From positions 148,862,001-148,926,000 of the forward strand of contig JBITNC010000001.1 in assembly GCA_050084985.1 (NCBI GenBank): a DNA stretch of 64,000 nucleotides, written 5' to 3'. The notes beneath the pieces were generated by a model. The model did not search any database and had not been told where the DNA came from. It saw only the letters and a program-made list of their open reading frames with translations. Below, piece by piece: positions 27,689-29,475 of the stretch. The stretch comes from Nageia nagi. Its lineage: Eukaryota > Plantae > Pinophyta. The translations under genes and the position numbers were made by a program. The number at the start of each line of letters is the position of its first letter. Position 1 is the stretch's first letter.

Positions 27689-29475
27689 ATATCCTCACAA
27701 GTTGTTTTTGTTTTTGCAATAACTTATTCTTTGTCGTTCTAAAGAAATGTGTATTTGATTATCATTTTATCTCTTATACTTTGAGATGGATAAACTATGC
27801 TCAACTTAAGAAGCTTTCATCTGTTTACAGGCTGCATAACAAAATTAGATTAAGTTAGGTGGTTATATGGAATCACAAATAATTTTCAAGGACGTGATGC
27901 AGGGTTATAAGTTTTTTCTAAACACCTATTTGTATTATAGTTTCAACTGTTAAACTTCACCATTGAATTCGGAATTTGAAATATATATTTCCTCCATCCT
28001 TTTCATGGTAATATGAATATATTTTTATATAATCTAAATTTACATCAGTTTAACCCTAAGAAGATTATGCAAGCATATGCAAAAATATGGAAGATGAATA
28101 TTGCCTTTTGAAGAGAGAAACGCAGGAAAACTTTTGTGATTTTAAATGGAGAAGCCAAACTGTTATTCCTGTGCTGATGCTATGTCTCTGGCTTTCTTAT
28201 TTGGTTTTACTTGTGAGCAAAAGGCATATCTTTCCTATTCCAACTCATGACTTAATTCAAGTGTTTTTAGACTTTTTAAGTTCAGATTTTTTGTATATCC
28301 TCCATTGACTTTTAGCATTTGATTTTTGTCTTGTCACTGGCATGAAATCTGTTTAAGTATCCATAGAAGGTATGCATGTTTGAGGACAAATGATATTGTA
28401 ATGAATAAGAGTAATTGACAAGAATAAATATAGGATTTTTGTGAAGAGCTCTTGATTGTTAGTATATCTAGTTATGTTTGTTCTTGAAAAGATTTGAGGA
28501 TGGCAAATGATTGTTTGGGACTTGTGGAGAAGGCAATGCTTTCAAAGATTTTGTTTTCTTTATAAATGTGTATTGGTTCATCTGTACTGGTTTCCAAATT
28601 TTAGCATAGGAAGAGTTTGAGTTTTTTGGGCTCTTCTCATTTTTTCACAAATTGAGAAGAATGTCTCAGGTGCTATTTTGTTCATAGGCAAGGTACTCTG
28701 CATCATGCTGTTGTTGGATGTTGAGTGTTTCTTGCATTACCTTCTTGCACTTGCTTGGGTGGCCTTTTCGGGCCATTTCTTTTATAGAATAATGCTTAAC
28801 CTGGTTCATATCATTCTTCTATTAAGATCTTGTCTTTTTGATGGACATTGTAGACATGAAAGTACACATTGACAATTGTTTCTCTTTTTGAAATAGTTTC
28901 TGAATTTTTTAAATTCTTATATTGGGATTTTTTCTAGACAATACATGGGTTACTACTTAGATGATGGCACTTAACTACCCAGGCACTACCCACAAGGTTT
29001 GTACGTGGATATGACCATTTTAAGCATCCTGACAACCACTCTGCCCAGCCCTGATTGTTCATTTCCTTCTGAATTTTGGCATGCATTCCATCAAACAAAT
29101 TGTGGGCGGTCAAATTTTGTGATATTAAATTATTAATACAATCTTCTTGTCAATATTTGCAGGCATACAATTTCTACACATTTACTAATATATAATTTGC
29201 ATTTATTGCAGTTCTGATAGTAGATGCCTTTTGTTCCTTGACATGGAAAGTCCCTATTAATATTTTTTTTTGACTTGTTTATCTTGGGCTTTGACGTGTT
29301 ATGCCTTTCATTGGGCCTTGCATACGCAGTTAGCATTATTGCATTCATGGTTTATGCACAAGTTTTTAATTGACATCATTTAGTTGATTCTATATGATGC
29401 TTTATCAGGAGTTGGAATTGAGGGTTATTCATTACTAATGACCTACACATCTTGATATTTCCTTGACTATGTCAC
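27689..29475 (+). other. U12-type (minor spliceosome) AT-AC intron, 1,787 bp
   Basis: 5' end ATATCCTC (U12 consensus RTATCCTT). Branch site TTTCCTTGAC at 29458-29467. 3' end TGTCAC at 29470-29475, with no polypyrimidine tract between branch site and acceptor. Splicing restores LGL-R-HFSLAMVAMDSLETW, collinear with vertebrate [19 protein letters not shown]. Confidence 0.92.

Follow-up and report, generated by a model that had tools for sequence, protein, structure and literature searches.

Exon-intron structure of the locus

The window, by which we mean the whole 64,000-nucleotide stretch of DNA that was analyzed, carries exons of the N-terminal HEAT region of a DNA-PKcs (PRKDC) gene (Table 1). 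The gene runs off the window in both directions, and its FAT, PI3K-like kinase, and FATC parts lie outside. Exon B is open from 27453 to 27688 with two bases (AG) left over, and the frame is open again from 29477 to 29686; the first base of exon C completes the split arginine codon (AG/G), after which the protein continues with HFSLAMVAMDSLETWKQLHP. Between these two exons lies an intron that begins with AT and ends with AC, whereas the three neighboring introns are GT-AG introns with pyrimidine tracts and without U12 motifs (no TATCCT or TCCTTRAY).

Table 1. Features of the DNA-PKcs gene within the window, with the evidence for each.
Feature	Position	Strand	Description	Evidence
Upstream microexon	1053..1082	+	about 30 nt	30 contig letters before 27054 match 1052-1081
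GT-AG intron	1083..27054	+	25,972 nt	contig continuation
Exon A	27055..27247	+	DNA-PKcs N-terminal HEAT region	contigs 27054-27245/7 in 4 runs; Pfam
GT-AG (U2-type) intron	27248..27452	+	205 nt; internal control	"skips 205 GT..AG" in X1, X2
Exon B	27453..27688	+	phase-2 end; AG = first two bases of Arg codon	contigs in 4 runs; Pfam
AT-AC intron, U12-type	27689..29475	+	1,787 nt	contig joint 27688->29476 in X1, X2, X3, X4
U12-type 5' splice site ATATCCTCA	27689..27697	+	exon context AAG/ATATCCTCA	
U12-type branch-point sequence TCCTTGAC	29460..29467	+	branch A at 29466	
Terminal AC of the intron	29474..29475	+	acceptor used in mature RNA	sequence and contig joints
Exon C	29476..29686	+		contigs in 4 runs; Pfam; tblastn with natural proteins P0002, P0008
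GT-AG intron	29687..41934	+	12,248 nt	X1, X2 letters after 29686 match 41935-41964 exactly
Exon D	41935..42124	+		RNA-backed start; end inferred from homology and the following GT

The 205-nt intron runs from GTATGG through a pyrimidine-rich stretch to TTACAG, and the intron downstream of exon C runs from GTTCGC through a pyrimidine tract to CCAG. The contig match that defines the microexon has a single mismatch, at its first letter, which belongs to the AG acceptor, and GTGAGT comes next. For exon D, tblastn with P0021 and P0023 gave matches at 41953-42126. The AT-AC intron (1.8 kb) and its 205-nt U2 neighbor are short, and the introns that flank them are far longer. Giant introns have been reported for gymnosperm DNA-PKcs, with gene lengths of 107-794 kb (PMC8021618), and those of 26 and 12 kb seen here are of that kind.

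Further strings resembling U12 donors were seen inside introns of the same gene, namely, CAAG/GTATCCTCC at 14848 (+) and ATATCCTTT at 42141 (+). The former was considered as a second U12 donor and rejected, as it lies inside the 26-kb intron, and no transcript evidence places an exon border there. An Rfam search of the window gave no matches.

The gene encodes DNA-PKcs

Exons were searched singly, and the split codon was read together with exon C only in comparing loci. Against the Pfam family DNA-PKcs_N (PF20500; gathering cutoff, 26.1 bits), exon A matched positions 589-640 with 50.8 bits and exon B positions 646-709 with 30.2 bits, so that both pass the cutoff; exon C matched positions 711-757 with 19.7 bits, which is below the cutoff when taken alone but collinear with the other two. 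Because the profile is left at 709 and rejoined at 711, exactly one position remains for the split arginine codon. A preliminary description of this DNA had claimed that the junction gives an ungapped match to the vertebrate sequence, and this holds for the Pfam profile.

DNA-PKcs chains were the only PDB matches to exon B (27453-27686; human residues 699-745, E = 0.003), and a phmmer search of the PDB with exon C alone returned no DNA-PKcs match. A profile of natural proteins across the junction, built from P0002, P0008, P0024, P0043, P0017, and P0023, aligned with residues 681-872 of human DNA-PKcs at an E value of 1.5e-39 and placed the split codon opposite Ser761. Among named proteins, those closest to exon B were from Ginkgo biloba (Gb_14396, 66% identity) and the ferns Adiantum capillus-veneris (60%) and Ceratopteris richardii (58%). 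Taken with the introns of 12 and 26 kb, these matches indicate a non-flowering land plant. In earlier work (PMC10419180; PMC8021618), plant DNA-PKcs was traced from green algae up to gymnosperms and was reported as lost in angiosperms.

Assembled contigs join the exons across the AT-AC intron

Assembled contigs were taken from four sequencing runs that belong to four studies, with X1, X2, and X4 under one species label and X3 under another, and were aligned to positions 25200-31000 of the window. The runs carry no RNA label on record; each contained about 15% of the words of the 3-kb stretch, which is roughly its exon content. In all four runs, one contig joined 27688 straight to 29476 ("skips 1787 AT..AC"), with zero letters common to both sides of the joint (both=0) and with 149-211 letters on the shorter side. 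The contigs thus use the junction that the preliminary description had put forward, with AT..AC ends, and not nearby GT-AG sites. No contig within 27689-29475 was found in the four runs.

The 205-nt GT..AG intron was also removed in contigs of X1 and X2, and contig ends beyond the aligned pieces mapped to 1052-1081 upstream and to 41935-41964 downstream. Since the contigs precisely skip four introns, their source must be spliced RNA. As they are assembled contigs only, they display the spliced form, and retention is not quantifiable from them.

Splice signals and class of the intron

Exon B ends at 27688 with GGATTAAG (as a longer string, CTTGGATTAAG), and the intron opens at 27689 with ATATCCTCAC; its donor has the form of the U12-type 5' splice site, /ATATCCT(T). 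At the other end, TTTCCTTGAC occupies 29458-29467 and is followed by TATGTCAC up to 29475, and the next exon begins with the G at 29476. The branch A is thus at a distance of 10 nt from the first base of exon C, in a string of the TCCTTRAY form that falls in the range of about 8-20 nt before the 3' splice site. Only TATGTCAC separates the branch site from the terminal AC, without a strong polypyrimidine tract, whereas the neighboring U2 introns have long T/C runs (a qualitative comparison). The exon end AG, the AT-AC termini, and the branch string are all as first described. The intron has a GC content of 32.5% and no second copy in the window by self-BLAST.

Neither motif is rare alone: counted over both strands of the window (128,000 positions), there are 13 copies of ATATCCT and 17 of TCCTTRAY. 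From these counts, the chance of finding both at two independently fixed boundaries is about 1.3e-7.

Assignment to the U12 class rests on these motifs and on published MIDB scores (scale, 50-100) of identical or near-identical strings from other introns. A minor intron of mouse Tcea3 has a donor with the identical intronic 9-mer ATATCCTCA, and that Tcea3 donor was scored 95.9 in MIDB; the ZDHHC18 donor, AAGATATCCTTT, has the same exon end as the intron studied here. The branch 12-mer, ATTTCCTTGACT, differs in its first letter only from the MIDB strings TTTTCCTTGACT (95.8) and CTTTCCTTGACT (91.0). AT-AC introns recorded in MIDB and U12DB (for example, mouse Tcea3, human TTC23L, and XRCC5) have the branch sequence TTCCTTGACT near the acceptor in common with the present intron and, like it, end in AC, lack a pyrimidine tract, and keep their position between distant lineages. 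The difference from those AT-AC introns of animals and angiosperms lies in the host gene, which here is DNA-PKcs.

An optimum of 11-13 nt has been given for the branch distance (PMC6717393). The 10 nt measured here is slightly under that optimum, within the span of 10-17 nt formed by this intron and its homologues described below. The U2-type GT-AG introns of the gene share a transcript with the AT-AC intron and are missing from the contigs that lack it, and they differ in having GT...AG ends and a pyrimidine tract. Nor does the intron have the makeup of a U2-type AT-AC intron, in which a major-type donor follows AT, the branch site is distant, and a pyrimidine tract is present: its donor is ATATCCT, its TCCTTGAC branch is at -10, and the pyrimidine tract is missing.

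U12-type introns number in the hundreds per plant genome, and where a gene has more than 80 introns, the prior chance that one of them is of this type is fair. Overall, we conclude with high confidence that 27689-29475 is a genuine U12-type AT-AC intron of the DNA-PKcs (PRKDC) orthologue in a non-flowering land plant, and that, within the N-terminal HEAT region, it interrupts in phase 2 the codon opposite human Ser761. The proposal of the preliminary description, an AT-AC intron with U12-type signals in plant DNA-PKcs, is borne out by the motifs, the contig joints, the Pfam matches, and the homologous loci.

Homologous introns in other lineages

A scan of metagenome contigs gave whole-intron DNA for L001, L002-L006, L008, and L009 (Table 2). 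L001 is another plant-like locus. L002-L006, which are 64% identical to exon B, we tentatively take to be moss-like from their project identifiers. L008 and L009 come from a GC-rich distant eukaryote and are 43% identical to exon B.

Table 2. Splice signals of the window intron and of its homologues in metagenome loci.
Locus	Donor	Branch	Distance of branch A from exon	Length	Spliced
Window	AAG/ATATCCTCA	TCCTTGAC	10 nt	1,787 nt	RHFSLAMVAMDSLETW
L001	GAG/ATATCCATG	TCCTTAAC	11 nt	115 nt	RYNPLASVAMDALERW
L002-L006	TAG/ or TCG/ATATCCTGA	TCCTTGAC	17 nt	343/344 nt	RYPPLGAVAMDALERW
L008/L009	AAG/ATATCCTCT	ACCTTGAC	12 nt	94/88 nt	SYIPLAVIGLDALEYW

All of these introns are AT..AC introns in phase 2 at the same codon as the one in the window, and all have TCCTTRAC or ACCTTGAC 11-17 nt before the exon. 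Outside the signals the sequences are unrelated, and the lengths, with the window intron included, differ twenty-fold. Unrelated interiors with constant signals are the pattern that would be expected of conserved splice signals. The split arginine codon itself varies, being CG/A in L005 and L006 and AG/A in L002-L004, a synonymous difference with the intron signals unchanged.

The preliminary description had looked to a comparison of intron position and class across lineages; agreement in position, phase, and class was found for L001, L002-L006, and L008/L009 and did not extend to two further metagenome DNA-PKcs loci, L010 (1740-1900) and L011 (800-1300), which have no intron at the GL/S or GL/R codon. 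In L010, a GT-AG intron interrupts the counterpart of exon B at another place. L011, presumably animal-like by its look, reads NAFKLGLSCTPMADLGLDALE and has a GT-AG intron seven codons upstream of the site. In the MIDB tables of human and mouse minor introns, whose text is possibly incomplete, neither PRKDC nor Prkdc was found, and XRCC5 was. Apparently, then, human, mouse, and the lineages of L010 and L011 make DNA-PKcs without this intron.

In one protein from Logan, P0019, the conserved GL is followed by KMGLRFVHTNSW, which fits AG/GTTTGT; this would place a GT donor in the same codon and phase. By its sequence, P0019 may represent a lineage in which the subtype or class of the intron has changed.

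The GC-rich contig of L009 (about 59% GC; L009:1-8000), which carries the distant DNA-PKcs, also encodes a protein with ankyrin repeats and a USP40-like protein with a ubiquitin domain. In a search of 5.8 billion proteins, the latter had no relative but itself. Of the searches bearing on L008 and L009, the one with P0024 retrieved three proteins, and that of the ESM Atlas returned generic HEAT-repeat clusters.

Gene models break at the intron

If the intron is left in, the frame reads RYPHKLFLFLQ and then TAA at 27720-27722, a stop that the preliminary description had noted and that translation confirms. The R-Y-P that opens this reading recurs in natural proteins. A phmmer search of 1.8 billion representative proteins with exon B gave 24 matches, mostly short fragments, and nine of them run to ...GLRYP, after which come unrelated residues or a stop: P0001 (Ginkgo), P0003, P0005, P0004, P0006 (Adiantum), P0007, P0010, P0012, and P0016. 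The residues R-Y-P correspond to xG/A TAT CCn, that is, to a phase-2 ATATCC intron translated through.

The Ginkgo model Gb_14396 (P0001) reads through the intron. The Adiantum protein KAI5080747.1 (P0006; 763 amino acids) stops at ...GLRYP, and this N-terminal part of DNA-PKcs is annotated as a protein of its own, a "DNA-PKcs N-terminal domain-containing protein"; the Ceratopteris protein KAH6555385.1 (P0039), a cluster member, also ends in ...GLRYP. For Ginkgo, Adiantum, Ceratopteris, P0004, P0007, P0010, and P0014, the evidence consists entirely of protein sequence. P0014 (GLSYPLSAV...) was considered as a read-through of TC/ATATCCTT and set aside as ambiguous, as these residues could equally be a real exon.

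The R-Y-P signature indicates that this intron led gene callers astray or made them stop in no fewer than three published plant annotations. It had been anticipated that gene finders limited to GT-AG introns would mis-model the gene, and the Ginkgo, Adiantum, and Ceratopteris models are cases in point. DNA-PKcs was long thought to be absent from plants, and such broken models contribute to its fragmentary annotation there. Earlier work has put missed plant DNA-PKcs genes down to annotation errors in general (PMC10419180; PMC8021618); compared with those accounts, one concrete cause is seen here, namely, gene models that break at an AT-AC intron.

Proposed splicing mechanism and alternative readings

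From established U12 splicing, the donor ATATCCT would be recognized by U11 and then by U6atac, and U12 would pair with TCCTTGAC, with G-U replacing A-U at the R position. On its sequence, then, removal of the intron would fall to the minor spliceosome and would most likely be constitutive. Failed splicing would lead to a stop after 11 codons and hence to no functional kinase, as would be the case for almost any intron.

Two other accounts of the junction were weighed against this one. Template switching by reverse transcriptase, misassembly, or contigs from a processed pseudogene or a paralogue might have produced the joint as an artifact, and it is in favor of such an origin that the runs are available as assembled contigs only and that their RNA nature is a guess. 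We nonetheless find an artifact scarcely credible, as the identical joint was recovered in four studies and under two species labels without shared letters at the joint, the contigs that carry it also lack neighboring canonical introns, the Pfam profile continues exactly across it, and orthologous loci carry the same intron. Removal of a real AT-AC intron by the major (U2-type) spliceosome has precedent, some AT-AC introns being spliced that way (PMC6717393). Such introns, however, are without an ATATCCT donor or an acceptor-near TCCTTRAY, both of which are present here and kept in every homologous intron, and the stretch between the branch site and the AC offers no pyrimidine tract; we therefore consider this route very improbable.

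The remaining alternative concerns what the intron does. As a regulated bottleneck, it would be spliced slowly or retained, and the minor spliceosome would gate the level of DNA-PKcs, for example, after DNA damage. Rate-limiting U12 splicing has been reported for some animal genes, retention here would give the premature stop at 27720-27722, and the U12 type has been kept across ferns, Ginkgo, moss-like plants, and a distant eukaryote. Against this, no contig with the intron retained was found in the four runs, although rare forms are lost from assembled contigs; U12 introns are conserved as a rule, which carries no implication of regulation; L010 and L011 do without the intron, and PRKDC is absent from the MIDB human and mouse tables, whose text may be incomplete. 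On balance, we think regulation of this kind unlikely. Equally doubtful in our view is the broader proposal that an ancient U12 intron, older than land plants and common to the distant eukaryote, was kept since its slow or regulated removal sets the DNA-PKcs level in non-flowering plants. If it were true, minor-spliceosome activity would be linked to end-joining repair.

Significance of the intron

The preliminary description was not aware of this intron having been described, and we likewise found no paper that does so. The literature yielded no U12 or AT-AC intron in DNA-PKcs or PRKDC, and neither PMC10419180 nor PMC8021618 mentions one; automatic intron databases may hold moss or lycophyte orthologues. 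One probable explanation for the silence of the literature is that the usual catalogues of plant U12 introns were drawn from angiosperms (Arabidopsis, rice, and maize), in which the gene is reported lost (PMC10419180), so that the intron could not be listed there.

The intron in the window adds one ordinary member to an intron class that is well known; it is not a new kind of intron. It does add a deeply conserved U12 intron position for a repair gene, one that human and mouse PRKDC and two other lineages apparently lack. In building full-length DNA-PKcs models for gymnosperms, ferns, or bryophytes, AT-AC splicing should be permitted at the codon matching Ser761 of the human protein.
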